A stretch of DNA of 64,000 nucleotides, taken from Scyliorhinus canicula. Taxonomy: Eukaryota. The notes beneath the pieces are model-generated. The model was not told where the DNA came from. It did not search any database and saw only the letters and a list, made by a program, of their open reading frames with translations. This document shows, piece after piece, positions 12,764-48,015 of this stretch (the first letter of the stretch is position 1; each line of letters begins with the position of its first letter). Location: NCBI RefSeq assembly GCF_902713615.1, contig NC_052160.1:41419440-41483439 (forward strand), in the 5' to 3' direction. Position numbers and translations under genes: made by a program.

Positions 12764-12777
12764 ANNNNNNNNNNNNN
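12764..12777. other. Assembly gap (further gaps at ~59646-59813 and ~60797-61082)
   Basis: N runs. Confidence 0.99.
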
Positions 12778-13161
12778 CTGTGTTGCACACCAGGTGTAAC
12801 ACAGGAAGCCCAGAAGGCCACCTGAGATCCTGAAATTTTAGCTTCGCCCAAATTTAGCAGCCAGACCAATGTGTGTTCAGATTAGGCGTGGGACTTCCCA
12901 CTGCTATATTGGTGCTCTTTGTGCCTATTTTACATTTTTAAAAACAGGTAAATCTGTGCACATTACAGTCCCCTGAATAGTGGAACAGGTCTCGTATTTG
13001 CATCATCAATCACTTTTTGACAGTAAGGGTTGGGCAATAGATGCTAACCTTGCAAGAGCTTCCTTGCCTTAACCTGACAAACCTGTTGGCTACATTCTCA
13101 TTTATTCGCTTTCTTGAACTGTAGTTTGGTCATCCCGCTATTAAAACATTTCTCGATTCTA

Positions 13162-13384
13162 GGGCGGCGCGGTGGCGCAGTGGTTAGCACTGCTGCCCCA
13201 GGGCACCGAGGACCCAGGTTCGGTCCCAGCCCCGGGTCACTGCCTCTGTGGAATTTGCACATTCTCCCCGTGTCTGCGTAGGTCTCACCCCCACAATCCA
13301 AAAAGATGTGCAGGGTAGGTGGATTGGCCACGCTAAATTGTCCCTTAATTGGAAAAAAATAATTGGGTACAAAAAAAATTTAAA
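13162..13384 (+). mobile_element. V-SINE, short subfamily
   Basis: Consensus match. Confidence 0.87.
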
Positions 13385-13399
13385 TCTCAATTCCTCTGG

Positions 13400-13613
13400 G
13401 ACATAAAACGGTTCGTTTGTATAATATAGAAAAGGTGCTGAAAAGGGTCATTGACCAGGGGCTGTACCATGAGGTGTCACTTTGAGCAGCCAGAGCTGCC
13501 AATCTAATCCAGTCTCTCTCTCCAACAAGCCACGCACAGAGGCTCTGCTATCCCAGTTTCCAGAGGTCGCTTAATTATTCTGCAGCTGTGTCTCACGCCC
13601 GAAACAGGTATGT
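13400..13613 (+). promoter_or_regulatory. Putative SCNN1G promoter and non-coding first exon
   Basis: TATA-like TATAATATAGAAAAG at ~13420, consensus donor CAG|GTATGT at 13607/13608, and locally raised CpG. The coding exon starts with a splice acceptor 20 nt before the ATG, so an upstream exon is required. Location is inferred. Confidence 0.45.
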
Positions 13614-14179
13614 ATTTAACGCGCGAATTATCTTCAGTCAGAAAATAGCGTAAACTAATAATACTGAAGTGAACTTTCTCAATTAGTACAGATAAATGAG
13701 ACAATCTAAACAAAATCTCACTGGGGTGTTGGTGAAACTTTAAAACGATTAGTTAACCACTCTGTTGCACTGAAACTTTTTTTTCCCCCCTCGAACTTTT
13801 AAAACTGGGCTTGAATGGGATTGTTTGATATGAGAAAGGGCGTTTTCTGGTAAATTTGTTCCAATATGACTCCAGGAGCTGGTGCTTGGAGTTTCGTTGT
13901 TTTATTCTTTTAATTAGCGGCGCTGAAAAAGTTTAGAGAAAAAACACTTCAAATTGTTTAAACAGTGGGAAGGAGGAATAAATCCAAATCCTCTGGGATG
14001 TTGAAATTAATGAATATTTACTTCATGATTGACGGTTCCGCTAGCAGGTCCAACCCTGATCACTTCGAAAGAAGCAAACGCGCGAGAGGTTTTTATTTAG
14101 TCGAATGTTTTGCGAAAGGAGCGCAGCGTTTTTAACCCAGCTATTGGCTGGAACTCATTTCACAAACACCAACTGAGTG

Positions 14180-14770
14180 AGCAGGGTGAGGGAGGTGGAG
14201 GGATGGGGAAGGGAAGGGACACGAGGAAGAGGGGTTGGAATAGTGGTAGGGGCGGGAAAGGGGAGAAGAGTGACTGGAGGGAAGGAGGTAGGAGAGGGAA
14301 GGAGCGAAATGGGTTGGGAGGGTGGAGGATGGAGGAGGGAAGAAGAATGGGGGATGGGAAGAGGTAGTGGACAGACAGGGACGGGATGCAGTGGGGGGGG
14401 GGGGGGGGGGTGGGTGGAAAGAAAGTGGGGTGGGTGGAAAGGGAGGGGGAGAAGAAAGGGGAGGGACACTTGGGATGGGGAGGGAGCAGGGGGGGGGCAT
14501 GATGAGGGGTGTGGTGAGATGGGAGAGGATGGGGAGAAGAGAGCATGCTGAAGGGCCGGTGGTCATGGTGAGGTGAGGTGGGATGGGGAAGTGGAGAGGT
14601 TGGATGAGGAGGGGAAAAGAAAGGGGCTGGGGGAGGATCTGTGTGGCATTTTGAGGGAATGGCGTGTGGGAGGGGAGGTGATGGGCCAGGTGGGGAGGGT
14701 GAAGGGTGGGGGTACGGGCTGGGTGGCAAAGTGGCAAGGGGGACAAGTGAGGAGAGGAAGGGGAGGGATG
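14180..14770 (+). repeat. G/A-rich polypurine tract just upstream of SCNN1G coding exon 1
   Basis: About 590 nt dominated by G runs and A. Confidence 0.85.
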
Positions 14771-14823
14771 ACTATCACTTTACTGTGAAATCTTCTGTGC
14801 CAGGAGCCCACTGCAGAGATACC

Positions 14824-15143
14824 ATGGAATCAGGAACAAAGCGACTGAAGGAGAAGATCAAAGAGAAGCTGCCAGTGACTGGACCACAGGCAACGAGTGC
14901 CTGCGAGTTGGTGAAATGGTACTGCTACCACACCAACACCCATGGCTGCCGCAGAATTGTGGTATCGAGAGGCCGGCTACGCCGGGCTGCCTGGTAATCC
15001 TGACATTCAGCACGGTGGGCATCATCTTCTGGCAGTGCGCTCTCCTCATCATTTTCCTACTACACTGCCTCGGTCACCATCACTGTCCAATTTCAGGAAA
15101 TCACCTTTCCTGCCGTCACCATCTGCAACATAAACCCGTACAG
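14824..15143 (+). CDS. SCNN1G: SCNN1G coding exon 1 (N-terminus, HG motif, TM1); -1 frameshift at ~14993 (TAA 14995-14997) and +1 at ~15052-15055
   Basis: ACCATGG Kozak at 14821-14827, acceptor AG at 14802-14803. [23 protein letters not shown]...GRLRRAAW*, then [20 protein letters not shown] in the shifted frame, then [29 protein letters not shown] in the original frame. Donor GTCAGT at 15144. Confidence 0.93.
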
Positions 15144-18100
15144 GTCAGTGTCTGCGTCTCTTGAACTGTAGTCCCTCAATTCCCAACCCTCAGTCTCTCA
15201 CTAACCCTACGCTCCCTGTGAAGCCCACGGTATGTCCAAAAGAATGAACTATAGCACTTTTCACAACCTCAGGACATAGAGACACTGAATTAGCTCCGAA
15301 GTGTAATCGCGTGTTGCAATGTGGGAAAATGCAGCAGACAATTTGCAGTCAACAAGCTCCCAAAAACAATGAGGTAACAATCAGCGAATGTGCATCAGTG
15401 ATGTTGATTGCGAGATGAATACTGACCACGATATTGGGAGAACTCCACTGTTCTTCTCCAAAGTAGTGCCTTGGGATTTTTTACATCCCACTTAGATAGC
15501 AAAAGGGGGCCTTGGTTTAATATATTTTTTAATATGCTCTGCCTGGGGAGATAATGAGTGAGATATCAATCTATAGAACAAACTCCTTCGGGCGACGATG
15601 GGAATGGTTCGTGATGTTACATTCAAATGCAAATTAAATAAATATCTTGAGAAAACAATATTATGGAATACACTACATGAATAATTTTAAACCTGAAATG
15701 TGGAGAGTGCAGCTTTGGAGTAAAATGTGTTTTTGGACCTATGGATTTCACCAGTGTGGTTTTCCTTGCCCCTATCTGGGTTTGTTGAGGACTAATTGAT
15801 CGAGGTTAATTGTTATAATTAGTCAATAACTCCATATTTGTTGCATCATGTGGACCAAGGTGGTAGAAAGTGAACATTATGGACTTTGGATTTTAAGGTG
15901 CAACAATTTCTATTTAGCCCAGGTTTATTCATATCTGTTCACAGATACAATGCAACAAGACACCTCTTTGAGAAACTAGACCGGAGACTCTGATTGCCAT
16001 CAAGGAGCTGTACTGCTTCACAGATAGTCCCAATAACAGCCAGGTGAAAACTCTGCACAAGATCGCCACAAACAGCCAAAATGACATATTGTTCCAGAAC
16101 ATTCCGCTGCTGATTGAGCTGGTGGACCACAAGTATATCATTGTGACTGACCTCATCACCAAGAAACAGCATGAGATCAATGGGACAATGAAAACCAAGT
16201 TGTTTGAGAGCATCAATACACAGTCCCAAGCCAAAACAGTCGGCTTCAAGCTGGTAAGTTGCACCTCCAGCTTAAAATCAAGCTCATTGGGGCTCCACTA
16301 GAGTGCAAGGTAGAGGGGGAGGACACAAAGATGTATGAGATGTCAGAGAGTAAACTCTGGATAAGCTGTGTCCCAACTTGATGCCCTTGTTTCTGCGATT
16401 GATCAGTGAAGACATCCTGGGTGTTGAGCAGCCAAAGGATTAAATCAAGGGTCCAGGCTCTGAGCACAGTGAGTGGGCTCGCACTGACCGCAGTGAGTGG
16501 GCTGGCACTGACCGCAGTGAGTGGGCTGGCACTGACCACAGTGAGTGGGCTGGCACTGACCGCAGTGAGTGGGCTGGCACTGACCGCAGTGAGTGGGCTG
16601 GCACTGACCGCAGTGAGTGGGCTGGCACTGACCGCAGTGAGTGGGCTGGCACTGACCGCAGTGAGTGAGCTGGCATGACCGCAGTGAGTGAGCTGGCACT
16701 GATCGCAGTGAGTGGCTGGCACTGACCGCAGTGAGTGGGCTGGCACTGACCGCAGTGAGTGGGCTGGCACTGACCTCAGTGAGTGGGCTGGCACTGACCT
16801 CAGTGAGTGGGCTGGCACTGACCGCAGTGAGTGGGCTGGCACTGACCACAGTGAGTGGCTGGCACTGACCGCAGTGAGTGGCTGGCACTGACCTCAGTGA
16901 GTGGGCTGGCACTGACCGCAGTGAGTGGCTGGCACTGACCGCAGTGAGTGGGCTGGCACTGACCGCAGTGAGTGGGCTGGCACTGACCGCAGTGAGTGGG
17001 CTGGCACTGACCGCAGTGAGTGGGCTGGCTCTGAGCACAGTGAGTGGGCTGGCACTGACCGCAGTGAGTGGGCTGGCACTGACCGCAGTGAGTGGGCTGG
17101 CACTGACCGCAGTGAGTGGCTGGCACTGACCACAATGAGTGGGCTGGCACTGACCGCAGTGAGTGCTGGCACTGACCGCAGTGAGTGGCTGGCACTGACC
17201 GCAGTGAGTGGGCTGGCACTGACCGCAGTGAGTGGGCTGGCACTGACCGCAGTGAGTGGGCTGGCACTGACCGCAGTGAGTGGGCTGGCACTGACCGCAG
17301 TGAGTGGGCTGGCACTGACCGCAGTGAGTGGGCTGGCACTGACCGCAGTGAGTGGGCTGGCACTGACCGCAGTGAGTGGGCTGGCACTGACCGCAGTGAG
17401 TGGGCAGTGAGTGGCTGGCACTGACCGCAGTGAGTGAGCTGGCACTGACCGCAGTGAGTGGGCTGGCACTGACCGCAGTGAGTGGGCTGGCACTGACCAC
17501 AGTGAGTGGGCAGTGAGTGGGCTGGCACTGACCGCAGTGAGTGGGCTGGCACTGACCGCAGTGAGTGGGCTGGCACTGACCGCAGTGAGTGAGCTGGCAC
17601 TGACCGCAGTGAGTGGGCTGGCACTGACCGCAGTGAGTGGGCAGTGAGTGGGCTGGCACTGACCGCAGTGAGTGAGCTGGCACTGACCGCAGTGAGTGGG
17701 CTGGCTGACCGCAGTGAGTGGGCTGGCACTGACCACAGTGAGTGGCTGGCACTGACCGCAGTGAGTGGCTGGCTCTGACCGCAGTGAGTGGCTGGCACTG
17801 ACCACAGTGAGTGGCTGGCACTGACCGCAGTGAGTGAGCTGGCACTGACCGCAGTGAGTGGGCTGGCACTGACCGCAGTGAGTGGGCTGGCACTGACCGC
17901 AGTGAGTGGGCAGTGAGTGGGCTGGCACTGACCGCAGTGAGTGAGCTGGCACTGACCGCAGTGAGTGGGCTGGCACTGACCGCAGTGAGTGGGCTGGCAC
18001 TGACCACAGTGAGTGGGCTGGCACTGACCGCAGTGAGTGGGCTGGCACTGACCGCAGTGAGTGGGCTGGCACTGACCAGTGAGTGGGCTGGCACTGACCG

Positions 18101-21100
18101 CAGTGAGTGAGCTGGCACTGACCGCAGTGAGTGAGCTGGCACTGACCAGTGAGTGAGCTGGCACTGACCGCAGTGAGTGGGCTGGCACTGACCGCAGTGA
18201 GTGGGCAGTGAGTGGGCTGGCACTGACCGCAGTGAGTGGGCTGGCACTGACCGCAGTGAGTGGGCTGGCACTGACCTCAGTGAGTGGGCACTGACCGCAG
18301 TGAGTGGGCTGGCACTGACCGCAGTGAGTGGGCTGGCACTGACCGCAGTGAGTGGGCTGGCACTGACCGCAGTGAGTGAGCTGGCACTGACCGCAGTGAG
18401 TGGGCTGGCACTGACCGCAGTGAGTGGGCTGGCACTGACCGCAGTGAGTGGGCTGGCACTGACCGCAGAGTGGGCTGGCACTGACCTCAGTGAGTGGGCT
18501 GGCACTGACCACAGTGAGTGGGCTGGCACTGACCTCAGTGAGTGGGCAGTGAGTGGGCTGGCACTGACCGCAGTGAGTGGGCTGGCACTGACCGCAGTGA
18601 GTGGGGTGGCACTGACCACAGTGAGTGGGCTGGCACTGACCGCAGTGAGTGGGCAGTGAGTGGGCTGGCACTGACCGCAGTGAGTGGGCTGGCACTGACC
18701 GCAGTGAGTGGGCTGGCACTGACCGCAGTGAGTGGGCTGGCACTGACCGCAGTGAGTGGGCTGGCACTGACCGCAGTGAGTGGGCTGGCACTGACCGCAG
18801 TGAGTGGGCTGGCACTGACCGCAGTGAGTGGGCAGTGAGTGGGCTGGCACTGACCGCAGTGAGTGGGCTGGCACTGACCACAGTGAGTGGGCTGGCACTG
18901 ACCGCAGTGAGTGGGCTGGCACTGACCGCAGTGAGTGGGCTGGCACTGACCGCAGTGAGTGGGCAGTGAGTGGGCTGGCACTGACCGCAGTGAGTGGGCT
19001 GGCACTGACCGCAGTGAGTGGGCAGTGAGTGGGCTGGCACTGACCGCAGTGAGTGGGCTGGCACTGACCGCAGTGAGTGGGCTGGCACTGACTGCAGTGA
19101 GTGGGCGAGCACTGATCACAGGGACTGGTACTGACCGGAGCAGAGAGACTGGGACTGACCAGAGCAAGAGACTGGGACTGACCAGAGCAGAGACTGGGAC
19201 TGACCAGAGCAGAGACTGGGACTGACCAGAGCAGAGAGACTGGTTCTGACCGGAGCAGGGGGTCTGATACTGACCGGAGCAGGAGGTCTGGTACTGACCA
19301 GAGCAGAGAGACTGGAACAGACCGGAGCAGGGAGACTGGGACTGACCGGAGCAGAGAGACTGGTACTGACGAGAAGGGGGTCTGGTTCTGACCGGAGCAG
19401 GGAGACTGGTACTGACCGAGCAGAGAGACTGGTACTGACCGGAGCAGGGGGTCTGGGACTGACCGGAGCAGGGGGTCTGGTTCTGACCGGAGCAGGGGGT
19501 CTGGTTCTGACCTGAGCCGGAGGACTGGGACTGACCGGAGCAGAGACTGGGACTGACCGGAGCAGGAGGACTGGTACTGACCGGAGCAGAGAGACTGATT
19601 CTGACCAGCGTAGGGGGTCTGGTACTGACCGGAGCAGAGAGACTGATTCTGACCAGCGTAGGGGGTCTGGTTCTGACCGGCGTAGGGGGTCTGGTTCTGA
19701 CCGGGGCAGAGGACTGGTACTGACCGGAGCAGGGGGTCTGGTACTGACTGGAGCAGGGGGTCTGGTACTGACCGGAGCAGGGGGACTGGTACTGACCTGA
19801 GCAGAAGACTGATACTGACCGGAGCAGGGGGTCTGGTACTGACCAGAGCAGGGGGTCTGGTACTGACCGGAGCAGGGGGTCTGGTGCTGACCGGAGCAGA
19901 GAGACTGATACTGACCGGAGCAGAGAGACTGGGACTGACCGGAGCAGGGGCTGATACTGACCGGAGCAGAGGGACTGGGACTGACCGGAGCAGAGAGACT
20001 GGGACTGACCGGAGCAGAGAGACTGGGACTGACCGGAGCAGAGAGACTGGGACTGACCGGCGTAGGGGTCTGGTTCTGACCGGCGTAGGGGGTCTGGTTC
20101 TGACCGGAGCAGGAGGACTGGTACTGACCGGAGCAGGGGTCTGGTACTGACCGGAGCAGGGGGTCTGGTACTGACCGGAGCAGGGGTCTGGTACTGACCG
20201 GAGCAGGGTCTGGTACTGACCGGTGCAGGGGACTGGTACTGACCTGAGCAGAGAGACTGATTCTGACCGGAGCATGGGGACTGGTACTGACCGGAGCAGA
20301 GAGACTGATACTGACCGGAGCAGGGGGTCTGGTACTGACCGGAGCAGGGGGTCTGGTACTGACCGGAGCAGAGAGACTGATACTGACCGGAGCAGAGAGA
20401 CTGGGACTGACGGAGCAGAGAGACTGGGACTGACGGAGCAGAGAGACTGGGACTGACCGGCAGCAGAGAGGACTGGGACTGATCGGCGTAGGGGTCTGGT
20501 TTCTGACCGCGTAGGGGGTCTGGTTTCTGACGGAGCAGAAGGGACTGGTACTGACCAGAGCAGGGAGTTGGTACTGACCGGAGCAGGGGGACTGGTACTG
20601 ACCGGAGCAGAGAGACTGATTCTGACCGGAGCAGGGACTGGTAATGACCTGAGCAGAGAGACTGATACTGACCAGAGCAGGGTGTCTGGTACTGACCGGG
20701 CAGAGAGACTGGTACTGACCGGAGCAGGGGGGGGGTCTCGGTACTGACCGGAGCAGGGGGGGTCTGGTACTGACCGGAGCAGGGGGTCTGGTACTGACCG
20801 GACGAGAGACTGGTACTGACCGGAGCAGGGGTCTGGTACTGACCGGAGCAGAGAGACTGGTACTGACCGGAGCTGGGGTCTGGTACTGACCGGAGATGGG
20901 GACTGGTACTGACCGGAGCAGGGGGACTGGTACTGACCGGAGCAGGGGTCTGGTACTGACCGGAGCAGGGGGTCTGGTACTGACCGGAGCAGGGGACTGG
21001 TACTGACCGGGCAGGGGGTCATGTACTGACCGGAGCAGGGGGTCTGGTAGTGACCGGCGTAGGGGGTCTGGTACTGACCGGAGCAGGGGTCTGGTACTGA

Positions 21101-24100
21101 CCGGAGCAGGGGGACTGGTACTGACCGGAGCAGGGGGTCATGTACTGACCGGAGCAGGGGGTCATGTACTGACCAGAGCAGGGGTCTGGTACTGACCGGA
21201 GCAGAGGTCTGGTACTGACCGGAGCAGGGGGACTGGTACTGACCAGAGCAGGAGTCTGGTACTGACCGGAGCAGGGGGACTGGTACTGACCAGAGCAGGG
21301 GGTCTGTGTACTGACCGGAGCAGTACCAGAGCTGGATTAGCATAGTGGCTAAACATCTGGCTTGTAAAGCAGAACAAGGCCAGCAGCGCAGGTTCAATTC
21401 CCGTACCGGCCTCCCCGAACAGGCGCCGGAATGTGGCGACTAGGGGCTTTTCACAGTAACTTTATTTGAAGCCTACTTGTGACAATAAGTGATTTTCATT
21501 TTAATTTTCATTCATTTCAGAGAGACTGGTACTGATTGGAGTAAGTGGACTATTCTGGACTGGAGCTCGAGGATGGACTTTTATTGCTGCTGTGCTTTTT
21601 TATAATGAGTTTTCTCTTGTTGCCCTCTTTATGAAAACAGTGCGAAGAAAATGATGACGGAAATGCTGCCTGCACCATCTACACATTCAATTCAGGAATA
21701 ACCGCTATCGAGGAATGGTATCGGCTGCACTACCTCAATATCATGGCACAGGTGCCCCAGAAAGCCAAAGTTCAGATGAGTTACTCTGCTGATGACCTCA
21801 TATTAAGCTGTGTGGTTTGATGGACTCCATGTGATTCAAGGTTCTTTCATTGAGATTTATACAAATACATCTCATTAACATTCAACTGAATAGAGAAGTA
21901 CAGCACTGAGGGAGGCTGCACTGTCAGAGGGTCAGTACTGAGGGAGGCCTGCACTGTCAGAGGGTCAGTACTGGAGGGAGTGCTGCACTGTCAGAGGGTC
22001 AGTACTGAGGGAGTGCTGAACTGTCAGAGTGGCAGTACTGAGGGAATGCTGCACTGTCAGAGGGTCAGGACTGAGGGAGCACTGCATTGTCGGATTGTCA
22101 GTACTGAGGGAGTGGTGCACTGTCAGAGGGTCAGGACTGTGGGAGTACTGCACTGTCAGTGCCAGTACTAAGAGAGTGCGGAACTGTCGGATTGTCAGTA
22201 CTGAGGGAGTGCTGCACTGTCAGAGGGTCAGTACTGAGGGAGTGCTGCACTGTCAGAGGGTCAGTACTGAGGTAGTATGCATTGTCAGAGGGATATACTG
22301 AGGAGTGCTGCACTGTCAGAGGGTCAGTATGAGCGAGTACTGCATTGTCAGAGGGATAGTACTGAGGGAGTGCTGCACTGTCAGAGGGTCAGTACTGAGG
22401 GAGTGCTGCACTGTCAGAGGGTCAGTACTGAGGGAGTACTGCATTGTCAGAGGGATAGTACTGATGGGACATGCTGCACTGTCAGAGGGTCAGTACTGAG
22501 GGAGTGCTGCACTGTCAGAGGACAACACTGAGGGAGTGCTGCACTGTCAGAGGGTCAGTACTGAGGGCAGTGCTGCACTGTCAGAGGGTCAGTACTGAGG
22601 GAGTGACTGCACTGTCAGAGGGTCAGTACTGAGGGAGTGCTGCACTGTCAGAGGGTTCAGTACTGAGGGAGGTCTGCCATTGGTCAGAGGGTCAGTACTG
22701 AGGAGTGCTGCATGTCAGAGGGGTCAGTACTGAGGGAGTGTGCATTGTCAGAGGGTCAGTACTGAGGGAGTGCTGCATTGTCAGAGGGTCAGTACTGAGG
22801 AGTGCTGCATTGTCAGAGGGACAGTACTGAGGGAGTGCGGGCACTGTGAGATGGTCAGTACTGAGGGAGTGCTGCACTGTCAGAGGGTCAGTACTGAGGG
22901 AGTGCTGCATTGTCAGAGGCGTATCTACTGGAGGGTAGCTGCCTGCACTGTCAGAGGGTGAGTACTGAGGGAGTGCGGCAACTTGTCAGAGGGTGGAGTA
23001 CTGAGGGAGTGCGGCACTGTCAGAGGGTCAGTACTGAGGGAGTGCTGCACTGTCAGGGTCAGTACTGAGGGAATGCTGCACTGTCAGAGGGACTACTGAG
23101 GGAGTGCTGCGCTGTCAGAGGGTCAGCACTGAGGGAGTGCCGCACTGTTAGAGGGTCAGTACTGAGGGAGTGCTGAATTGTCAGAGGGTCAGTACTGAGG
23201 GAGTGCTGAATTGTCAGATGGGTCCAGTACTGAGGGAGTGGTGGCACTGTCAGAGGGTCAGTACTGAGGGAGTGCCGCCACTGTTAGAGGGTCAGTACTG
23301 AGGGAGTGCCGCACTGTTAGAGGGTCAGTACTGAGGGAGTGCTGAATTGTCAGAGGGTCAGTTACTGAGGGAGTGCTGCACTGTCAGAGGGTCAGTACTG
23401 AGGGAGTGCCGCACTGTTAGAGGGTCCAGTACTGAGGGAGTGCTGCACTGTCAGGAGGGTCAGTACTGGAGGGAGTGCTTGCACTGTCAGGAGGGTCAGT
23501 ACTGAGGGAGTGCTGCACTGTCAGGAGGGTCATTACTGAGGGAGAGCTTGCACTGTCAGAGGGTCAGTACTGAGGGAGTACTGCACTGTCAAGGGGTCAG
23601 TACTGAGTGAGTGCTGCACTGTCAGAGGGTCAGTACTGAGGGAGTGCTGAATTGTCAGAGGGACAGTACTGAGGGAGAGCGGCACTGTCAGAGGGTCAGT
23701 TAATTGAGGGAGTGCTGCCACTGTCAGAGGGTCAGTACTGAGTGAAGTGCTGCATTGTTCAGAGGGTCAGTACTGAGGAAGTGCTGCATTGTCAGAGGGA
23801 CAGTACTGAGGGAGTGCTGAATTGTCAGAGGGACAGTACTGAGGGAGAGCGGCACTGTCAGAGGGACTACTTGAGGGAGTGCTGCACTGTCAGAGGGTCA
23901 GTACTGAGGGAGTGCTGCACTGTCAGAGGGTCAGTACTGGGGGAGTGCCGCACTGTCAGAAGGTCAGTACTGAGGGATGCTGCCCTGTCAGAGGGACAGT
24001 ACTGAGGGAGTGCTGCACTGTCAGAGGGTCAGTACTGAGGGAGTGCTGCATTGTCAGAGGGTCAGTACTGAGGGAGTGCTGCATTGTCAGAGGGTCAGTA

Positions 24101-27100
24101 CTGAGGGAGTGCTGCATTGTCAGAGGGACAGTACTGAGGGAGTGCGGCACTGTGAGATGGTCAGTACTGAGGGAGTGCTGCACTGTCAGAGGGTCAGTAC
24201 TGAGAGAGTGCTGCACTGTTAGAGGGTCAGTACTGAGGGAGTGCTGCACTGTTAGAGGGTCAGTACAGAGGGAGAGCTGCATTGTCAGAGGGACAGTACT
24301 GAGGGAGTACTGCATTGTCAGAGGGACAGTACTGAGGGAGTACTGCATTGTCAGAGGGACAGTGCTGAGGGAGTGCTACATTGACAGAGGGACAGTGCTG
24401 AGGGAGTGCTACATTATCAGAGGGATAGTACTGAGGGAGTGCTGCACTGTCAGAGGGTCAGTACTCGAGGGAGTGCTGCACTGTCAGAGGGTCAGTACTG
24501 AGGGAGTGCTGCACTGTCAGAGGGTCAGTACTGCGGGAGTGCTGCACTGTCAGAGGGTCAGTACTGAGGGAGTGCTGCACTGTCAGAGGGTCAGTACTGA
24601 GGGAGTGCTGCATTGTCAGAGGGACAATAGTGAATAACTGCGCACTGTCAGAGGGACAGTACTGAGGGAGCACTGTGCTGTCAGAGGGACAGTACTGAGG
24701 GAGTACTGTGCTATCAGAGGTGCAATACTGAGGGAGTACTGTGCCTGCCAGAGGGTCAGCACTGAGGGAGAACCACACAGTCAGGAGGAGCAGTCGTGAG
24801 GGGCGTACTGCACTGTCTGAGGGATGTTAGTGAGGAAGAACCACACTATCAGAGTGACAATACTTGCTGTATAAGTGGCAACATTTGTCCATTGTTTCCA
24901 ATGACTGACCAGCCCTTGCTGATTTGCTTTTCCTGTCGAGTTACTTAGGTTTGTTGTCTCTCTCCCTATTGCAGGAACTTCAGTTAATGCACCACCCCCC
25001 CTCCATGGAAACTGCTTCACCTTCAATGGTGGTGAGAACGACATCATCCTCAAGACCATCACGGCGGTCCGAAAATGGTAAAAACCCACTGGGCGAAAGT
25101 ACTTGTCTCCGACAGAAAGACGCTGGGCTGGCGGGCACATGTCGCAGTAGTGGTTAGCATTGGGACTGCAGCGCTGTGGACCCAGGTTCGAATCTCGGCC
25201 CTCTGGTCACTGTCCATGTGGAGTTTGCACATTCTTCCCATGTCTGGTTGAGTTTCACCCCCACATCCAAAGATGTGCAGGTTAGGTAGATTGGTCATGC
25301 TAAATTGCCCCTTAATTAGGACAAAAAATAATGGGTACTCTAGATTTAAAAAAGAATAAAGAAAGACGTTGGGCTGATTCTCCGCTTTGCGACGCCGGAA
25401 ATGTGAATTGCGAACGGGCGGAGAATCGGTGCGCCCGGCACAAATCATAGTTTGAACCCCATTCGGGTGCCCTCACCCGGACCCTCCCCAGATGCGAGAA
25501 ATGGGATTTGTGCCCCACTACGGTGTGGGCATGCACACTGGCATTTACCTGCAGTAAATCATGATTAGCGGCTTGGACAGAAACATGCTTTGCCCTTTCG
25601 TGATGCTCCACCACTCTCAGGTGGGTGTCTCGCAGGCGCAAATTACTACAAGTATTTGCCTGGGCCGGGTGGCAGTAGCGGGGCGCAACTTGGTGCAAGT
25701 CTGTGGACCTCAGGGTGTCTCCCGCTCGGGATTGGGATGACCTGGCTCAGTCTGCCATTGCTGCAGTCTTTTCAAATACAACGCTTGGTGCTACTTACCG
25801 ACTCATGGCTGCTCACACTGCTGAGGGTGCCTGTGTCGTTTGAATGTTCAGAAGGCCCTCTGGTCATCTGGTGGCCCACCCAGGCTGCCCACTCTGGACA
25901 TACCCTGCATACATAACAATGCCAAGCTCAATCAGGAGCCCACCAGGTTACTGCTACCTCACGGCGCCAGGGCCCAGGTTCGATCCCGGCCCCGGGTCAC
26001 TGTGTGAAGTTTGCACATTCTCTCCATGTCCCACCTCTCACAAACCCAAAAATGTGCAGGTTAGGTGGACTGCCATGCTCAATTGCCCCCTTAATTGGGA
26101 AAAAAAAGAATTGGGTACTCTAAATTTATATGATGAAAAGGAGCCCACCAGGTGTTGGGACCCCTCAGAAGCACCTGCTCCACTGCAAAGGTAGCAGGGG
26201 ATCAACGGAGCTCGCCCCAACCAGAGGACACCGCACCATGGTCTTGGAGACCTCCCTGGTTTCATGCCCCTCTCAGGGCAGAGGCCCTTACCAGTGACCC
26301 CGCCACCCCTCGGGACTCAACAACTGTATCCTCATGGTGAGGTTGGCGGCACTTGACTGCCTTTTGTCACCAATTCCCAGGCTCGGTTCAGGGGGGTGGG
26401 CTTGGGCCTGTGGCCCACCCAGGGGAAGAAGGTGTCCCTCCACACCACACACACATGGAGCTGTGGGTCCACCTCGGCACTGCGACCCTCAGGGGGGTAC
26501 ATCTTCTGTGAGACATAAGACCATAAGACCATAAGACATAGGAGTGGAAGTCAGGCCATTCGGACCATCGAGTCCACTCCACCATTCAATCATGGTGATC
26601 TGCGAGGCTGCAGTGTGGTAAATGGAGTGCTTAAAACAGCTCCAGCTGCCAGGCCTCTTTAGGGTTAGAATGCCTACTGGGCCAGAATTGTTCAGAATTC
26701 ACTGCCAGCAGAGTGCTGCCCTATTTGATTGACCTGACTCTCTTACCGATTAGTGTCCCCAACGGGAACGGGAACCGCACCCGACGCCGGTGCCGGCATC
26801 AACACATAGGGCATGATCAACCGGCTGTGTTACGCTCTCGCTTGAGACGCGGTGAGGCCGATGCTGGATGCTGGGAGAAGCCTCCTGCGGATTTCCCAGC
26901 AGCCTTCACGCCTCACAGGCTTTACCCAAGTCCATCAGAATCATGGCCAAGGGGCGTGACCAAATGGCACTTGCGAAGGTCAACGAGCTTACCCGGGATC
27001 TGGGGGGGGGGGGGGGGTTGGGTTATGTGGGGGGGGGTTGGGGTTGTGGGGGGTGGGTTGGGGTTGTGGGGGGGGTTGGGGTTGGGGGGGTGGGGGGGGG

Positions 27101-30100
27101 TGGTGGGGGGGGGGGTTGGGGGTGGGGGTGGGGGGGGTTGGGGGTGGTGGGGGTGGGTGGGGGGGGGTTTGGGGGGAGTCTCTAGGCTAGCGGGACGATC
27201 CCATGGTGGTCAGGGTCAATGCAGGGTGTCTCGCTGGCTCCCCCCAGAAAGTAGACACCTTGGCAGTGCCTGGGTGGCACTGCCAAGCTGACACGAGCAC
27301 TGCTAGGGTGGCACTGCCAAGGTCCAGGGGCTGAGGACGACCATGCCCATGAAAGGAGGGTGAAGGGGGGGGTTTGAAGAATGGGCAGGGGTGCATGGCA
27401 GGTAAGAAGGGGACTGTTGGAGGTTGTGGGGTTGACGGATGGGGGTCCTGCAAGGGGGGGCCTGGAAGGAGGCGTGGGGAGGCCTGAAGAAGAGGGACCC
27501 CCAGGGACCCTATAGCAGGGTGTGCTCACTTGGTGGAGCGTGGGGCAGTGCCTATGTGCGTGGGGACGACATTGCCCATGGGTAGGGTGTGTGGGGGACC
27601 CACAAGTTCGCTGAGAGATTGGGATACCCCTTTCAAAATGCGGCGTGATCTCTGAGTTCAGCTTCTCAGCGCTAATGAAAATTCTAAGTGTGGGCTAAAC
27701 CGGTGAGAAACTCCCCAGGGTCCAAGAAAGTGACAGAGTGTCTTTGAATAGCTGTGGGAAACTCGCTGACAGAGCCAGCGGGAAACTTCCTGAAAAACAC
27801 GTCACAAATGAACTTAGAAAGTTTTCCATTGAATTCCGCCCATGGTTGCCCAAATGGATAATCCTGTCTGTCGTCAAAAGTTCAAGAGAAAATGGAACTG
27901 GAAATGATTTTGTCCAACATCTTACTCTGTTTATGCAGTCTATCGTATGGCCCTGGGTGCAGCCTACCTTTACTTAGATCCAGGATGTGGCCGACCCTTT
28001 ACTCTGGCCCTAGCTGGTACAGTCTACTATCAGCTAACAGCACAGGACAAGGCTCAACTCTGGATTCTTTGCGGCTTGTAAAGCTCAGTTACTGACTGGA
28101 TTAAGTCAACAAGCCATTGGAAAACCATTTAAAATCTCTATTATAGTTATTACAACCTTATTTCTCTTTCCTCCAGCAGTTGCAATTCCCCTCCTAGGTT
28201 TTGCTATAATTACCACAAAGTAAATGACCTTCATGATAGACCACTTCTTGCACATAAGGTCTGACCGATATCCATCATAAACTCTGACTGATAGCCATCT
28301 CAAGGTTTTACTCACTCTGAACCAATGTCCTCTAAGCCACCGTTTTCAACACTGTCAGATACATGCGTGAGTGAACGCAGGAACTATTAAAATTACTCAC
28401 ATGAACAACACAGGAGCTGGCCGTTCAGTCCATTGTACCTGTGACGATGGCTCTTCGAAAGAGGATTATTTTCCCCAGATCCTGTGAAATGTTTCTTTTT
28501 CAAGTATTTATCCACTTTTCTTTTAAAAGTTGTGATAAATTCTGCTTCCTCCACCATTTCAGTTGGACATTCCATATCCTAGCAACCCTCTGCGGAAGAA
28601 AATTTCTTCAAATTCTCCCTTTGCTCTTAAAAGTATTTTTATCCCCCAATTACCAACTGCTTTCAGGAAAGATTGGGAGAAGAACAAAGAGGCGGTGAGG
28701 GAACAATGCGATAAAACTTACATCACACTGGAGTATTAATGGTCAAAGGCCATGTCAGTCATGGCTCATTATATATCTTTCGCCTCCGAGTCAGGAGGTC
28801 ATGAGTTCAAACTCCACCCCCTCCAGGGATTTAAGCACATCATGCAGACTGACATTCTAATCTAGGGCAGTACTGAGGGAGTGCTGCACTGTCAGAGGGT
28901 CACTACTGAGGGAGTGCTGCTCTGTTGGAGTTACTGGACTGGATTCTCCATTGTCGGGATGCTCCATTTCGCTCGAGGTGCACTCATGCCCGTGGATTTC
29001 CCGACAGCGCGCGGGTGCCCACAATGGGAGACTCCATTGGCCAGCTGGCGGGATGAAGGATCCCGGTGCCGACGGGACTGCGCCGCACCAGAAAACGGTG
29101 CGGCGGGACGGAGAATCCCACCCCTTTCAGATGAGACAATAAACCAAGCCTCAATCAGCCCCCTCGGGGTGGATATACAAAATCCCATTATACTAATTGA
29201 AGAGGAACAGTAGAGTTTTTAGTGCTGTCCTGGACAATATCCCTCAACCAACATCATTGAAGCAGATTATAGGGCGGCACGGTGACACAGTGGTTAGCAC
29301 TGCTGCCTCACGGTGCCAAGGACCCGGGTTCGATCCCGGGTCAGTGTCCGTGTGCAGTTTGCACTTTCGCCCCGTGACTGCGGAGGTCTCATACCCCAAC
29401 CCAAAGAATATGCAGGGTAGGTGAAATTTTTAATTAAATCAGATTATCTGGCCATTTTCCCATTGCTGTTTGTGACGGCTTGCTGTACGTCAATTAGTTT
29501 TTTTTAAATTTAGGATACCCAATTCTTTTTTCCAATTAAGGGGCAATTTAGCATGGCCAATCCACCTGCCCTGCACATCTTTGGGTTGTGGAAGTGACAT
29601 GGGGAGAATTTGCAAACTCCACACGGACAGTGACCTGGGGCCGGGATCGAACCTGGATCCTCAGCGCCGTAGGCAGCAGTGCTAAACACTGCTCCATCGT
29701 GCTGCCCACAGTACACAAATTAGTTACTGTGTTTCCTAGATCACAACAGTAACTACAGTTTATTGACCGTAAAGCATTTTGGGATATACGGAATTCATGA
29801 AAGGCACTACATAAGCACAAGTCTTTATTTATTTTCTCTCTCACAGGCCTGAAGGTAACTCTGCACCTGGATGAGAATGAGTATAATCCATATCTGTTCA
29901 CCTCAATGGGAGCGAAAATTGTCATTCACGATCAGAATGAACAGCCATTTGTTGAAGACATGGGGATTGAGATACAGACAGCAACTGAGACAGCCATAGG
30001 CCTTGATAAGGTAAACCACCCAAAAGGGACCTTGTTCATTGGGGTTGGGGGAGAACTAAACATCATGCATGAGCCAATAATCTCAGGTCAACAGATGCCA

Positions 30101-33100: not shown

Positions 33101-36100
33101 TCCTCGGTGCCATGAGTCAGCAGTGCTAACCATTACACCACCGTGCCACCCCATATGTTGATTTATTATAATGATCTACACTTGAACGTTGGGAAATGCG
33201 CCCGTCAATGACGGAGGGAAGGGACAATCGAGTCACACATTTACATCATCGGAAAACGTTACTTTGCTGTTCTGCCATGTTTTCCAATCCCATCGTCGAC
33301 CTGACGGGAGCAGGAGCGGAAAATCCCAGCCATAGGTTACAAAAGAAAGAAAGTTATGGTGATGCTTTATAAAACACTGTTTTGGCCTCAGCTGGAGTAT
33401 TGTGTCCAATTCTAGGCACCACACTTCAGGATGGATGCAAAGTCATTAAACAGGGTGACAGTGATGAAGGACATTAGTTACAAGGATCAATTGCAAAAGA
33501 TGAGGCTTTTCTCCTTCGAGCAGAGAAGGTTGAGAGGAGACTCCACAGAAGTATTCAAAATCATGAGGTGTCTGGATAGAGGAGACAGGGAGAAACTGTT
33601 CCCATTGGTGGTAAGGTCAAGAACCAGAGGAAAAAGGAATCAATAGTGACATGAGGAAAGGCTTTTTCACGTATGACTGCTTAGTTTCTACTGGAGACTG
33701 GCGGAAGCAGATTCAATTGTATTTTTTCAAAGATTCTTGGGTAAGCATCTGAAAGAAAACACTTGGCAGGGCCACTGGAAACGTCAGAGGAGTGGAACTA
33801 GCTGTCTCTGACAGACAGTCAGCATGGACACGATGGGCTGAATGGCCACCTTCTCTGCTGTACCCGTTCTACAATAGATTATAATAGATTAATTCAGCCT
33901 GTGTACAAAGGCGTGCTGCACTGTACTAAATTCTCTCTTATGCGTTAACACCTGCAAAGTAGCACACATGATTCTATGAACATATTAAGTGTGTGTACCC
34001 CCCAATCTTGACCGATAGTTTTGTTAGCTGCAATTTGCCTTTTCCTGAAGACTCTCAGAACTCCCTTGCTGTTGTTTCAGACAGTATTGAAGAGGCTGAG
34101 CAGCCCATATAGTGACTGTACTATGGATGGATTTGATGTGCCTATGACAAATCTCTATAACAAGACCTACTCATTGCAGGTAAGGATTCAACTTACGTAC
34201 AGCTGACAAAACAAACCTAAGGGTTGAGGATAGAGGCCGGAGTCTAACCTGGCTGATTTTCTATTTGCCCTATAGATGTGTCTGCACTCGTGCTTTCAAA
34301 TGGAAATGGTCCGTAGCTGTGGCTGTGCTCACTACGCAAAGCCATTGCCACCAGAAGCAGAATACTGCGACTACACAAAGTACCCAGGGTGGAGTGAGTT
34401 CACACTTTCTCTCTGCCGATACCTCCAGTTGCGTAGAATTCTACATCCAAAGATCATAATATAACAAATAAATTTGAAGCAATTTGACCTGTTATGTGGT
34501 TCGGTAGAGGGGACACTTTATGCACAGCAAGATCCCAAAAAGTGCTTCAATTTTAATTTCCAGTTAGTCTCCAAGTTTAGACAGTGATGGTTAGTGAAGG
34601 AGTGTTGAGCAGGATGCTGGTAGAATGTAAGGAAAATATCTGATCGAGATGCTTAAAATGATTAAATGATTTAATAGGCGAAGCTACTTCCAGTGGTGGG
34701 TGCAGGTGGGGGGGGGGGGGGGGGGGGGGGGGGGTGCAGAGTCCAGAACAAGGAGTACTAACCTTAAACTTAGAACTAGGTCATTCAGAAGATCTGAAAC
34801 AATATGGATTTGATTCTGTGTAAATATCATTTGAGATTATTGTGTTACCTGTGATTGTTTAAGAAACTGCTTTCTTTCCCCACAGTTTCCTGCTATTACA
34901 GACTGCGCAACCAGTTTATTCAGGAGCAGTTGGTTTGCCAGAAAACTTGTCGACCTGCCTGTCAGTAAGTTCCCCAGGCCCAAAACCTGACCATCCTTCC
35001 CCAACTCTGAGACATGTCTGGAGAGAGCACCAAAGATGCAGAGTTGCAATTATTCCCCATGACATTTACAACCTCCGCAGGACTCATTACAGAGAAAAGT
35101 ATCTGCTTCCTTGTCTTTAGATTATCAGGCCACCTGAACAGATGTAAAGAACGTTCTCTGTACAATCGTAGTCCAATTCACTGATGTAAAGGCCAGTTTC
35201 TGGTTCAATGCTGGTCCTGTAGAGTCAGTGCCCTATTTCAACTTTCTCTCTCACTTTATCTCAGTGACTCAGCTTGCTAATAATGCTTTGTGTGATCTTT
35301 CCCACAGTTCCAAGGAATGGACAATGACCATTAGTGATGCTGAGTGGCCTTCATCACCATCTGAGGTGAGCAGTAACGGGGAGATATACCCCACCTCTAG
35401 CAACTGGATTATTTATTCATAGTCAGTCTGTGTCAAATGAGAAATCTTTCAAAAGGAAACATCGTTGGGGAGTCAAGTATTGTTTACAGGTGGCCACATG
35501 CACACTTTCTACTCAAACACAACAAACAAGTTAATTATCCTCCAATGCACTCGCACACTCTCTCACACCCCTGCTCACTCCGTCACAAACCCAGTCACAT
35601 CTATGGACACTCACAAGTAAATACACATTCACACTAACTCACACGCCCACTCATTCCCACTTAGTCAGACACACATGCAAACTGACCACTGAGATACAAA
35701 CAAACTCATGGACACAAACACTCACACACCCATACAGACTGAAAAGATAGATAGATCTGCATAAACATAGTGCCTTTCCTCACCTCGTAACATCCCAAAG
35801 CACTTTACAGCCAACAAAGTATGTGATGGCCAGGATTCTCCGTTGCGAGTCCGCCCCACTACCGTTGCAAGCGAGGATGGAGAATTTGGCGCACAGCTAA
35901 ATCCTCCATTCACCACAGCAGGACGGGAGAATCCCGCTGCCGTGAACAGCTGGAGAATCCCGCTGGCGTGAACGGACGGAGAATCCCGCCCAATGTAATA
36001 TAGGAAGCTTGGCAGCTAATTTGCTCACAGCAATTTCCCACAAATCCACTGATTAATGAGTGGATTATCTGTTTCTTGTGATGTGGGTTGACCAAGACTC

Positions 36101-39100
36101 CAGGGATATGTTCCTGCCCTTCTTCAAAGTAGCATCTATTTATATTCATGTTTTAAATTTATTCTTTCAATGATGTGGGCATCTCTGACAAAGCCAACAT
36201 TTGTAATCCATTGCTAAGGGCGATACGGTAGCACAGTGATTAGCACTGTTGCTTCACAGAACCAGGGTCACAGATTTGATTCCCGGCTTGGGTCACTGTC
36301 GGTACAGAGTCTGCACGTTCTCCCCATGTCTGCGTGGGTTTCCTCCGGGTGCTCCGGTTTCTTCCCACAAGTCCCGAAAGACGTGCTGTCAGGTGAATTG
36401 GACATTCTGAATTCTCCCTCTGTGTACCCGAACAGGTGCTGGAGTGTGGCGACGAGGGGATTTTCATAGTAAATTCATGCAGTGTTAATGTAAGCCTACT
36501 TGTGACAATAATAAATATTATATTATTATTATTATTTTTCTTGAAATAAATTTAGAGTACCCAATTGCCTTTTCCAATTAAGGGGCAATTTAGCGTGGCC
36601 AATCCACCTATCCTGCACATTTTTGGGTTGTGGGGGTGAAACCCACGCAGACACGGAGAGAATGTGCAAACTCCACACGGACAGTGACCCAGGGCCGGGA
36701 TTCGAACCCGGGTCCTCAGCGCCGTAGGCAGCAATGCTAACCACTGTACCACCGTGCTGCCCACATATATTATTATTAATTGCCATTGAACTAAAGCAGC
36801 TTGCTCGACCATTTGAGGGAGCAATTAAGAGTCAACCCTATCTCTATGGATGTGGAGTCACAGGTAGGCCAGACCAGGTAAGGACAGAAGATTTCCTTCC
36901 ATAAAGGACAGTAGTGAAGGCTATGGGTTTTTATGACAATCAATGATAGTTTCATCATCACCATTACTGAGACCAACTTTCAATTCCAGATTTGCTTAAT
37001 TGAGAATAAATTTTACCCACTGTTGTGTCCCCAGAGACTCTGGATAACTGGTCTAGTGAGATTACCACTACACCACCACCTCCTAACAATCAGATAGGCC
37101 TCAGTTTAATATCTCACCGTAACAGTGTAGCACACACTCAGTACTGCCCTGGGAAATCAGTCCTGATTTTGGTGCTCTTGTCTCTGAAGTGAGATTTGGA
37201 CCCACCACATTCTGACTTGGATGATAATAATAATAATCGCTTATTGTCACAAGTAAGCTTCAATGAAGTTACTGTGAAAAGCCCCTAGCCATATTCCGGC
37301 GCCTGTTCGGGGAGGCCAGTACAGGAAGGTGAGAATACTAGGAACTAAACCACAGCTAACACACTCTGTACCGGTGAGCTTGTTTACCTTCTCCATGGTA
37401 GGTGGAACAGAGAATGTTCAGGGTTTCTAAAGGAGTTGTGTTGATGGAGTGTTAGAATATGTTAAACGTGGTGAAAGGGAGGAGAGAGAACCAGATTGAC
37501 ATGTGAATAAACTACTCCCATTCTGACCCTTGGTGGAATGTGATGAAATTATCTCACTTCATTGTCCTTCCTGCAATAGGAATGGATTCTTCGTCTTCTG
37601 AGCTGGGAAAAAGGGCTCCGTGGAAACAGAACATTGAGAAAGTAAGCTCTGATTTGTTAACTTGCCTTAATTTCTTGAGGGTGCTGGCTCACGCAGTACG
37701 GGATGGCTATCACTCAGCTGGAGTCGCCTAGTGACATTCCTTATGTGCGATTCTGGACAGTAAGTGGCACTGAGCAGTTATCAAACGGGCACATAATACT
37801 GTACCTGGCAGGATCTTTGTTAACCAAGTGATTGGGGTGTGCAAACACAACTTACCAACACATGCATTAGAAAAAACATTAAAATAAAAGCAAAATTCTG
37901 TGGATGCTAGAAATCCTAACTAAAAACAGGGAATTCTGGAAAACTCAGGTCTGGCGGCATCTGTGGAGATAAACACAAAGTCAACGTTTTGAGTCAGACC
38001 AGCTCAGAAGAACAGTCATACATAGAAACATAGCAGATAGGAGCAGGAGGAGGCCATTCGGCCCTTCAAGCCTGGTCCACCATTCATTATGATCATCACT
38101 GATCATCCAACTCAATAACCTGATCATGCTTTCCCCTCGTATCTTTTGATCCCCAAGTGCTATATCTAACTTTCTTGAAAACAAACAATGTTTTGGCCTC
38201 AATTACTTTCTGTGGTAATGAATACCACAGGCTTACAACTCCCTGGGAGAAGAAATTTCTTCTCGCCTCAGTCCTAAACGGTTTACCCCTTATCCTCAAA
38301 CTGTTACCCCTGGTTTTGGACACCCCCGCCATCGGGAACATCCTTCTTGCTTCTACTCCTGTTAGAATCTATGAGATTCCCCCCTCATTCTTCTAAACTC
38401 CAGCGAATATAATCCTAACCGACTCAATCTTTCCTCGTACTTCAGTACCGCCATCCCAGGAATCAGTCTCGTAAACCTTCTCTGCACTCTCTAGGGCAAG
38501 AATATCTTTCCTCACATAAGGGGACCAAAACTGTACCCAATATTCCATGTGTGGCCTCACCAAGGCCCTGCTCCTGCACTCGAATCCTCTCGTTATGATG
38601 GCCAACATGTCTTCTTTACTGTCTGCTGTACCTTCATACTTACCTTCAGTGACTGGTGTACCAGGGCACCCAGGTACTGTTGCACATTCCCCTCTCTTAA
38701 TTTACGGCCATTCAGATAATAGTGGATAACCTCACATTCTGAATTCTCTCTCTGTTTACCCGAACAGGCGCCGAAATGTGGCGACAAGGGCTTTTTCACA
38801 GTAACTTCATTGCAGTGTTAATGTCAGCCTACTTGTGACAATAAAGATTATTATTATTATTTATTCAAATTATACTGCAACTGCCATTCATTTGCCCCCC
38901 CCACTCAACTTGTCCAAATCACACTGAAAGATTTCTGCATCCTCCTCACAGCTCACCCTCCCACCCAGCTTTGTGTCCTCTGCAAATCTGGAGCTATGAT
39001 CTCTGCAATACCCCACTAGTCAATGCCTGCCATTTGTTTCCTATCTGCCAACCAGTTTTCTGTCCATCTCAACACACTACCCCTAATCCCATGCGTTTTA

Positions 39101-42100: not shown

Positions 42101-42662
42101 AAGAGTTCACAGACTTTACTGAGACATCATGGTCTTATTTCCACCTAACAGGAATGAGTTAGCCAATTTGGGCATCTTCTACAAAGATCTCAATCAGAGG
42201 AACATTTCTGAAACAGCTGCCAATGACGTAAGTGTTCAATAATACTCATTATATCCGTTAATGTGAGTTTTTCAACCAAACACTGCAGGGGGATCCCAGG
42301 TTTGTTTATCAATCTGTGGTTAGCTAAATTGGACAACAGCGAAGGCAGAGAGTCTCCGCACCAATGGGCTAGTGATTAGGAAATTGCTACAGGTTCCCAA
42401 TCCAGAGGTTCAGACCAGAAGTGGACATAACTGAAATTGGGTGACTACAGGGATGAGATACCTCTGTGATTAAATAGCCTGATGACTACCACTCCCGAGG
42501 ATTGCATGTGAATAAATAATAGTCTCCAGTGAAAATTTAGGCCCTAGGGTCTACTTTGCCATTCATTTAGATTGTGGTTAATTTGTATTTTAAGTTCACT
42601 GACCCGCCTTGGTTTATTAACCCAGATTGCCTGAGAACAACCCATCAAGTCTACCCCTCCGC

Positions 42663-46280: not shown

Positions 46281-46936
46281 TTGCATTTTTGCAAGGGCTT
46301 TTGATGATTTTTAATTTAATTAAGTTCTATACGTCAAAGGCCAAGGAACATTTCTCAGTACTGTTAAAATATTAGATCATCCCAGTACAGCTGTACCAGA
46401 TCTATATGTCTCCCACGCTGCGATTGTGTCCTCCACATGTTGAAATTGTGCTCTCTTGACCTCTCACCCCCACCCCAGCTAACCCCTAGATCAAGTTTGT
46501 GGGGTCACTCGGAAGGTACCAACTTAGCAGGGCTTAGGCACCAACCTATGTTATGCATTCAGAAGTTCTAACACTTGCCCGCATAGAGGGGAAATATTTA
46601 GTTTCCCGGTTTCCCTCGTCTTCCTGGGTAAATTGCACAATCTGTTTTAAAAGGCACTTGGCTTCCGTGTTCCTCTTGCAAGATCATTTTACTTGCATAT
46701 ACATAATCCATCGGTTTACTTTGGCTCTCTCGCAGCAATACAGTAAACAAGGCTCTTGGTGAGCCGAAGTGCGATCCACCAATATGTTGTGGACTCCAGA
46801 GATATTCCAGGCCCCATCTAAGAAAGTGGAGTCGGAACTCTTAATGAAGGGATTATTGAGAGACTGAAGCCTCGCAAACAGACCTGTCCCAGTCACAATA
46901 TTTGCAATTTAAGGAATGAGTGCAAATACACTTACT

Positions 46937-48015
46937 GGGGTGGCACAGTGGTTAGCACTGCTGCCCCACAGAGCCAGGGACCCGGGTTCAACTCCGACCT
47001 TGGGTTCGACTCCGACCGTCGGTGACTTTGTGGAATCTGCACAGTCTACCCGTGTCTGCGTGGGTTTCCTCCGGGTGCTCTGATTTCCTCCCACAGTCCA
47101 AATATGTGCAGGTTAGGTGAATTGGCCAGGTTAAATTGCCCCTTAATGTCCAATGGTTAGATTACTAGGTTACGGGGATTGGGTGGGAGAGTGGGCCTAG
47201 GTTTGGTGCTCTTTCAGAGAGTTGGTGCAGATTCGATGGGCCGAATGGCCTCCTTCTGCACTGTAGGGATTCTATTCTATGATTTAATTTTGTTTAGCAG
47301 TAAAATAATACCATATAAGAGGATAATAATCTTGAAAGTGTCACATGTAGGCTCACATTAACACTGCTATGAATAGCATTGCTGCCTCAAAGCGCCGAGG
47401 TCCCAGGTTCAATCCCTGTTCTGGGTCACTGTCCGTGTGGAGTTTGCACATTCTCCCCGTGTTTGCGTGGGATTCGCCCCCACAACCCAAAGATGTGCAG
47501 GGTAGGTGGATTAGCAATGCTAAATTGCCCCTTAATTTGAAAAAATGAATTGAGTAGTCTAAATTTATTTTTAAAAAGCACTGCCATGAAATTACTGTGA
47601 AAATCCCCTAGTCGCCACACTCCGATGCCTGTTCGAGTACACTGAGAGAGAATTCAGAATGTCCAATTCACCAAACAAGCACATCTTCCGGCACCTGTGG
47701 GGTTTGATTCCTGGCTTGGGTCACTGCCTGTCTGGAGTCTGCACGTTCTCCCCGTGTCGGCGTGAGTTTCCTCCAGGTGCTTCAGTTTCCTCCCACAAGT
47801 CCCGGAAGATGTGCTGTTAGGTGAATTGGACATTCTGAATTCTCCCTCAGTGTACCCGAACAGGCACCGGAGTGTGGAGACTAGGGAATTTTCACAGTAA
47901 CTTCACTGCAGCGTTAATGTAAGCTTACTTGTGACACTAATTAAGATTATTATATTATAACCCCGGTTCCTTGGCGTTGTGAAGCAACAGTGCTAACTAC
48001 TATGCTCCCGTGCCA
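46937..48015. mobile_element. SINE cluster in the putative SCNN1G 3'UTR: + HE1-like (46937-47282), + short (47375-47577), - tail (47583-47700), + alternative-tail V-SINE (47701-47956), - head (47959-48015)
   Basis: Consensus matches on both strands. Confidence 0.8.

Follow-up and report, generated by a model that had tools for sequence, protein, structure and literature searches.

Apparent half-decay of a catshark gamma-ENaC gene most probably reflects consensus errors in a G-rich minisatellite patch

The window, i. e. the whole stretch of 64,000 nt of Scyliorhinus canicula DNA analysed here, carries the gene SCNN1G (gamma-ENaC) on its plus strand, with 12 coding exons spread over about 13.4-46.3 kb. 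A library search with the last exon led to a gamma-like protein of a skate (P0001), and the best 120 matches listed for this skate protein were all gamma subunits; full-length orthologues of numerous sharks and rays were obtained in this way. Among the full-length proteins, the gamma-like isoform X1 of Scyliorhinus torazame (XP_072337288.1, here P0138; 651 aa) is the nearest; isoform X2 of this species (P0026), whose cluster contains P0138, is 86-100% identical per exon. A protein or cDNA of the species itself was found neither in the searches of the protein collection with P0001 and with an S. torazame fragment of exons 1-2 (P0136) nor in the cluster listing. Among known structures, the exon 1 piece matched human ENaC gamma (6wth_C, E=1e-20) far better than beta (E=1e-3), and the same order was obtained for the exon 3 piece (6wth_C gamma, E=1e-17; beta, 1e-8; alpha, 1e-6), whereas the finger piece encoded by exon 2 could barely be aligned to human gamma (E=0.3). 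As judged from these comparisons, the gene is the SCNN1G orthologue, and the gamma subunit is closer to it than the alpha, beta and delta subunits are.

The Pfam profile PF00858 (ASC; cut-off 23.6 bits) was matched by the exon 12 piece (32.7 bits, E=5.5e-8) and by the exon 7 piece (27.5 bits, E=2e-6); a scan of the exon 1 and exon 3 pieces gave no match, these pieces being too short. The profile is present in all full-length homologues. Moreover, the translations show an N-terminal HG motif, TM1 followed by FPAVTICN, and TM2 with an SCS filter, and we take HG, the FPAVTICN-type motif and the TM2 G/SxS filter to be signatures of the ENaC/degenerin family. By its ASC profile and its two TM segments with their motifs, the predicted protein is thus a member of this family. 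About 17 kb downstream of the gamma gene, on the same strand, lies a beta-ENaC-like first coding exon with an open frame (63336-63599); the window contains this exon only, and the remainder of the gene lies beyond its edge, so that the beta gene called intact in the first-pass annotation is represented here by a single exon. SCNN1B as the direct downstream neighbour on the same strand is the synteny of a gamma gene: In tetrapods, the gamma gene is followed by the beta gene. Upstream of the beta-like exon, a long degenerate TG-rich array of 18-22-bp units (57058-61357) contains two runs of N (59646-59813 and 60797-61082); a further N run is located at 12765-12777.

The exon-intron structure, the minisatellites and the lesions are compiled in the table. 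The 5' UTR exon may start as early as 13371, as indicated by the X6 contig, and in the RNA contigs this exon is joined to coding exon 1 in such a way that 20 nt precede the ATG. As compared to the first-pass annotation, exon ends had to be moved by about 1 nt, so that exon 1 ends at 15143, exon 2 starts at 15945, and exons 3 and 4 occupy 21641-21840 and 24975-25077, respectively. Just upstream of the 5' UTR exon, the interval 13147-13392 belongs to a very high-copy repeat with a summed contig depth of 1e5-1e7 in every DNA and RNA run and with many variant positions, probably a SINE or another interspersed repeat. Fragments of tRNA-derived SINE-like ORFs recur through the window, e. g. at 46909-47094 in the 3' UTR.

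Table. Exons, intronic minisatellites and lesions of the gamma-ENaC gene, in positions of the window.
Feature	Position	Strand	Basis and remarks
5' UTR exon	13513-13607	+	spliced RNA contigs X9, X6; joined to 14804
Coding exon 1	14804-15143	+	ATG 14824; N-terminus, HG motif, TM1, FPAVTICN
Exon 1 lesions	-1 at 14992/3 (between TGG and TAA); +1 T at 15052-54 (TTTT)	+	net 0
Coding exon 2 (finger domain)	15945-16253	+	joint 15143>15945 in both RNA contigs
Exon 2 frameshift	-1 at 15982/3	+	net -1
Intron 2 minisatellites, 24-bp unit	16456-21323 (sub-arrays 16456-19115, 19121-21323)		TRF
Coding exon 3	21641-21840	+	homology; AG/GT sites
Exon 3 lesions	extra G at 21815; missing C at ~21825; TGA 21818 between	+	net 0; homology
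Intron 3 minisatellite, 33-bp unit, ~88 copies	21901-24823		TRF
Coding exon 4	24975-25077	+	homology; 31-mer word test
Exon 4 lesions	-1 at 24984; +2 in C7 run 24995-25001; -1 at ~25063; -1 at ~25072	+	net -1; homology
Coding exon 5, intact	29847-30010	+	alignment to P0138
Coding exon 6, intact	34081-34179	+	alignment to P0138; skipped in S. torazame isoform X2
Coding exon 7, intact	34276-34393	+	alignment to P0138; Pfam ASC
Coding exon 8, intact	34886-34964	+	alignment to P0138
Coding exon 9, intact	35308-35365	+	alignment to P0138
Coding exon 10, intact	37580-37641	+	alignment to P0138
Coding exon 11, intact	42152-42227	+	alignment to P0138
Coding exon 12, intact	45918-46280	+	TM2 with SCS filter, PPTY motif, stop codon; Pfam ASC

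As written in the assembly, this gene is broken in its first third of exons. We mapped the lesions by a frameshift-aware alignment of the window to P0138, direct inspection and the arithmetic of exon lengths, and this reproduced the earlier count of about nine frame-breaking indels of 1-2 nt, all of them in exons 1-4. The four stops (TAA 14995, TGA ~15991, TGA 21818 and TAA 24985) were found again as well, the reading frame from ATG 14824 does end after 57 aa, and none of the nonsense codons in the broken part arose by substitution. Exon 4 measures 103 nt instead of the expected 104 nt, which corresponds to -1 +2 -1 -1. That its C7 run adds one proline codon in frame was considered and dropped, as 103 versus 104 nt requires +2. 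The base missing near 15983 had been given as G; it is in fact A (CAG, Gln). It had also been stated that every lesion lies in a homopolymer: This holds for most of them but not for the A at 15982, which is outside any homopolymer. A loss that had escaped the earlier list is that of GCT behind 16105, in frame and a unit of a CTG repeat; with GCT restored, the sequence reads IPLLLIELVD, the S. torazame counterpart being IPLLQIELVD. Exons 5-12 are as clean as had been claimed: their 1019 nt have AG/GT sites throughout and are free of stops, frameshifts and gaps relative to P0138, to which 327 of 338 aligned residues are identical. Such clean open frames suggest that the error rate of the assembly is low in this part.

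The two halves of the gene lie in different surroundings. Between 14 and 28 kb, where exons 1-4 are located, the GC content is 0.49-0.64 with a GC skew of +0.15 to +0.39; around exons 5-12 it is 0.42-0.48, and there is no skew. The minisatellite arrays of intron 2 are G-rich on the coding strand (GC 0.57-0.64, GC skew +0.2 to +0.3), and so is the 33-bp array of intron 3. Single-base noise in the latter had been put forward as support for sequencing error; this is partly right, and such noise is inseparable from real variation between repeats. Intron 1 (1.2 kb) contains a GGGAGG-rich stretch at about 14100-14800, and in this stretch a 14-nt unit behind 14189 is one of the pieces that the assembly lacks. 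In an older Illumina assembly of S. torazame, the orthologous gene is split, with exons 1-2 on a 1.9-kb contig (P0136), exons 5-12 on a 45-kb contig (P0137), and exons 3-4 lost. Since the S. torazame gene is broken at exons 3-4, the same stretch is hard to assemble in that species, too. Both the 61 kb of the S. torazame gene and its lost exons 3-4 hint that the minisatellite arrays at these introns may be conserved, with a length that varies. For the confinement of nine lesions to exons 1-4, a probability of roughly 0.48^9 under uniform decay had been calculated. The arithmetic is fair, but the value measures local assembly quality rather than selection: The lesions are skewed to exons 1-4 because these exons sit in the G-rich minisatellite patch.

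Public reads of the same species allow a direct view of exons 1 and 2. A run search with the interval 14700-16450 returned DNA runs of two samples and several small runs, each of the latter with about one quarter of the words of the interval, which is roughly the exonic share. The contigs of four runs were aligned to 12778-16450, i. e. those of the DNA runs X1 and X2, at a low depth of 3-5, and those of the RNA runs X9 and X6, which belong to different studies and reach depths of 44.7 and 120.3, respectively. Each RNA run contributed a single contig (X9, 2755 nt; X6, 1134 nt) with the joints 13607>14804 and 15143>15945, both GT..AG, the first of them aligned as 13604>14801 with the cut at +3; two such joints inside a single contig identify these contigs as spliced mRNA. 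At its end, the X9 contig probably runs into a SINE copy, and no poly-A signal was found near 46964. At all positions in question, the reads disagree with the window, whose own version has a depth of 0 in each case: At 14992, the reads contain an extra G (X9, X6), at 15052, they are one base shorter (X1, X9, X6), at 15982, they contain an extra A (X2, X9, X6) that yields GAC CAG GAG with Gln as in S. torazame, and at 16105, all four runs have the extra GCT. Thus the mapping of reads that the first-pass annotation had proposed gives a uniform answer for exons 1-2: Three out of three frameshifts are missing wherever a DNA or RNA contig extends across them, and this holds for four samples.

The non-coding flanks tell the same story. 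Indel discrepancies between reads and window were found at 13785, 13884, 13983 (+CCC), 14164, 14189 (+14 nt), 15768 and 16336, the one at 15768 in both DNA samples, X1 and X2. Altogether, about 11 indel events were counted in the 2.2 kb or so of 13586-16450 that the DNA contigs cover. Over about 650 nt of exon sequence, the substitutions between reads and window numbered 0 (X6) and 1 (X9). The discrepancies are therefore indels rather than substitutions, the flanks included, and many indels with next to no substitutions, in coding and non-coding sequence alike, are the signature of consensus errors and not of evolution. Moreover, RNA-type runs of several further studies contain words of the exons, which speaks against a decay of expression or splicing.

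For exon 4, the run search was performed with the 103-nt exon alone, on the basis of seven sampled 31-mers and no alignment. All 14 runs that contain the exon, from eight studies and of both DNA and RNA type, contained exactly four of the seven words (0.57), and none contained more. If the window was correct, transcripts that cover exon 4 would hold seven of seven words, and four are seen instead. With the four lesions absent from the reads, 31 of the 73 possible words (0.42), those inside 25002-25062, are expected to be found, and 4/7 fits this value within sampling. This indirect test points to an absence of the words spanning the exon 4 lesions from the reads. The lesion pair of exon 3 is probably a consensus error, too; outside of these lesions, 61 of 67 residues of exon 3 are identical to S. 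torazame.

The constraint on the broken part was measured as the ratio of protein divergence in exons 1-4 to that in exons 5-12. For this purpose, a conceptual translation with an X at each break was aligned with nine chondrichthyan gamma proteins. Relative to other sharks and rays, the ratio is 1.03-1.93 for the window and 1.02-1.80 for the intact protein of S. torazame against the same species; with Mustelus as the partner, the divergences in exons 1-4 and 5-12 are 0.118 and 0.115 for the window, and 0.103 and 0.100 for S. torazame. At the protein level, exons 1-4 thus appear to diverge just as those of intact orthologues do, and the constraint on them is, by this measure, not relaxed. The gamma orthologues of S. 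torazame, Mustelus, Carcharodon, Cetorhinus, Chiloscyllium, Heterodontus and Heptranchias are full length.

Taken together, our data lead us to the view, which we hold at a probability of about 95%, that this SCNN1G gene is functional and transcribed and that the nine indels which break the frame of its exons 1-4 represent consensus errors of the assembly rather than mutations. The first-pass annotation had already leaned towards unpolished long-read consensus, and the reads, the indels of the flanks, the spliced transcripts and the unrelaxed constraint uphold this preference. Its alternative, a true loss of full-length gamma-ENaC by mutations that have become fixed in a unitary pseudogene, has to be rejected, since in all four samples the DNA and RNA contigs lack the frameshifts of exons 1-2. 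In itself, a loss would not be implausible, as the function of ENaC in marine elasmobranchs is unstudied (PMC9581171), and the frame as written is indeed broken nine times, with four stops; however, the lesion words of exon 4 are absent from 14 runs, a spliced transcript is present in several studies, nonsense substitutions and an excess of amino-acid divergence are lacking, and the non-coding flanks exhibit the same pattern of indels. We therefore regard fixed loss as virtually out of the question.

Two narrower possibilities deserve attention. The assembled individual might carry a private or rare null haplotype while other animals have an intact allele, and the runs are indeed tied to the species, none of them being proven to come from the assembled animal, and the DNA depth is low. 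Nine indels with 0-1 substitutions in 650 nt are, however, unlike an old null haplotype, the excess of indels extends into the flanking non-coding DNA, and two DNA samples and at least eight studies are without a trace of the window version, with one multi-run DNA sample that is likely the assembly's own. This makes a null haplotype extremely improbable. To the same very small degree, one might consider a mixed case in which the lesions of exons 1, 2 and 4 are artefacts and the pair in exon 3 is genuine or else is circumvented by recoding or by skipping of the exon, given that the read-based tests cover only exons 1, 2 and 4 among the lesion-bearing exons. Yet the exon 3 lesions are of the same type as the others, i. 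e. 1-nt changes of run length, they belong to the same error-rich patch, with a minisatellite on either side, and the remaining exon is as close to S. torazame as stated above; moreover, the RNA contigs extend beyond exon 2 by 228 and 2007 nt, which is compatible with the inclusion of exon 3, even if the length of X9 is only loosely informative. That at least the exon 3 pair with its TGA at 21818 is genuine, or that the assembled animal has a genuine null haplotype, is highly improbable. If one of the two was true, some catsharks would have an ENaC without gamma or with a truncated gamma, and the transcript would still be expressed.

How may consensus errors have come to mimic the decay of half a gene? 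Exons 1-4 lie in a patch of about 14 kb (~13.6-28 kb) that is GC-rich, G-skewed and full of 24-bp and 33-bp minisatellites. In this patch, the long-read consensus most probably retained small indels, one per 200 bp or so, whether the sequence is coding or not, and it is tempting to speculate that the polishing with short reads failed there. Such a failure would fit a PacBio-CLR/Arrow/FreeBayes pipeline as used for sScyCan1.1, provided that the window stems from that assembly. As context, the published sScyCan1.1 assembly is based on 63x CLR reads and on polishing with Arrow and FreeBayes.

If consensus error is accepted, there is nothing real about the half-broken state of this gene. Within the gamma-ENaC family the gene is then an ordinary one, and catsharks retain and transcribe an intact gamma-ENaC beside beta, as other cartilaginous fishes do. 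Our work also provides a calibration: In this genome, 1-nt indels that cluster in conserved exons can be pure consensus error, confined to G-rich patches flanked by minisatellites, and the pattern of a clean and a broken half that had seemed non-random tracks the local quality of the assembly. Claims of gene loss that start from frame-broken genes in this genome thus need a check against reads first.

The gene can be compared with three known systems. With the gamma-like protein of S. torazame it shares the layout of 12 coding exons, a length of 651 aa, and an identity of about 95% in exons 1-4 outside the breaks (289/305) and of 96.8% in exons 5-12 (328/339); the two differ in that they belong to different species, with 27 amino-acid differences, and in that the annotated S. 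torazame gene covers 61 kb as opposed to about 33 kb here. The gamma subunit of human ENaC (SCNN1G; 6WTH/6BQN chain C) has in common with the shark protein the HG region, FPAVTICN, the cysteines of finger, thumb and palm, the SCS filter in TM2 and the C-terminal PY motif. In contrast, the finger part of shark exon 2 is hardly alignable, and, as compared to the human sites, there is no evident RKRR-type furin site in the shark sequence. The proteolytic activation of the shark gamma-ENaC may thus differ from that in mammals, to judge from exon 2. Finally, false pseudogenes that result from residual indels of CLR or ONT assemblies are a known class of artefacts, and NCBI flags them as 'LOW QUALITY PROTEIN'. 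The catshark gene matches this class in its clustered indels of 1-2 nt, which are mostly changes of run length and mostly deletions, in their absence from short reads and RNA, and in the fact that the non-coding flanks are hit, too. It departs from this class in that one lesion (A 15982) is outside a homopolymer and one is the loss of a 3-nt repeat unit, and in that the errors are limited to a G-rich patch flanked by minisatellites, so that half a gene seems decayed.
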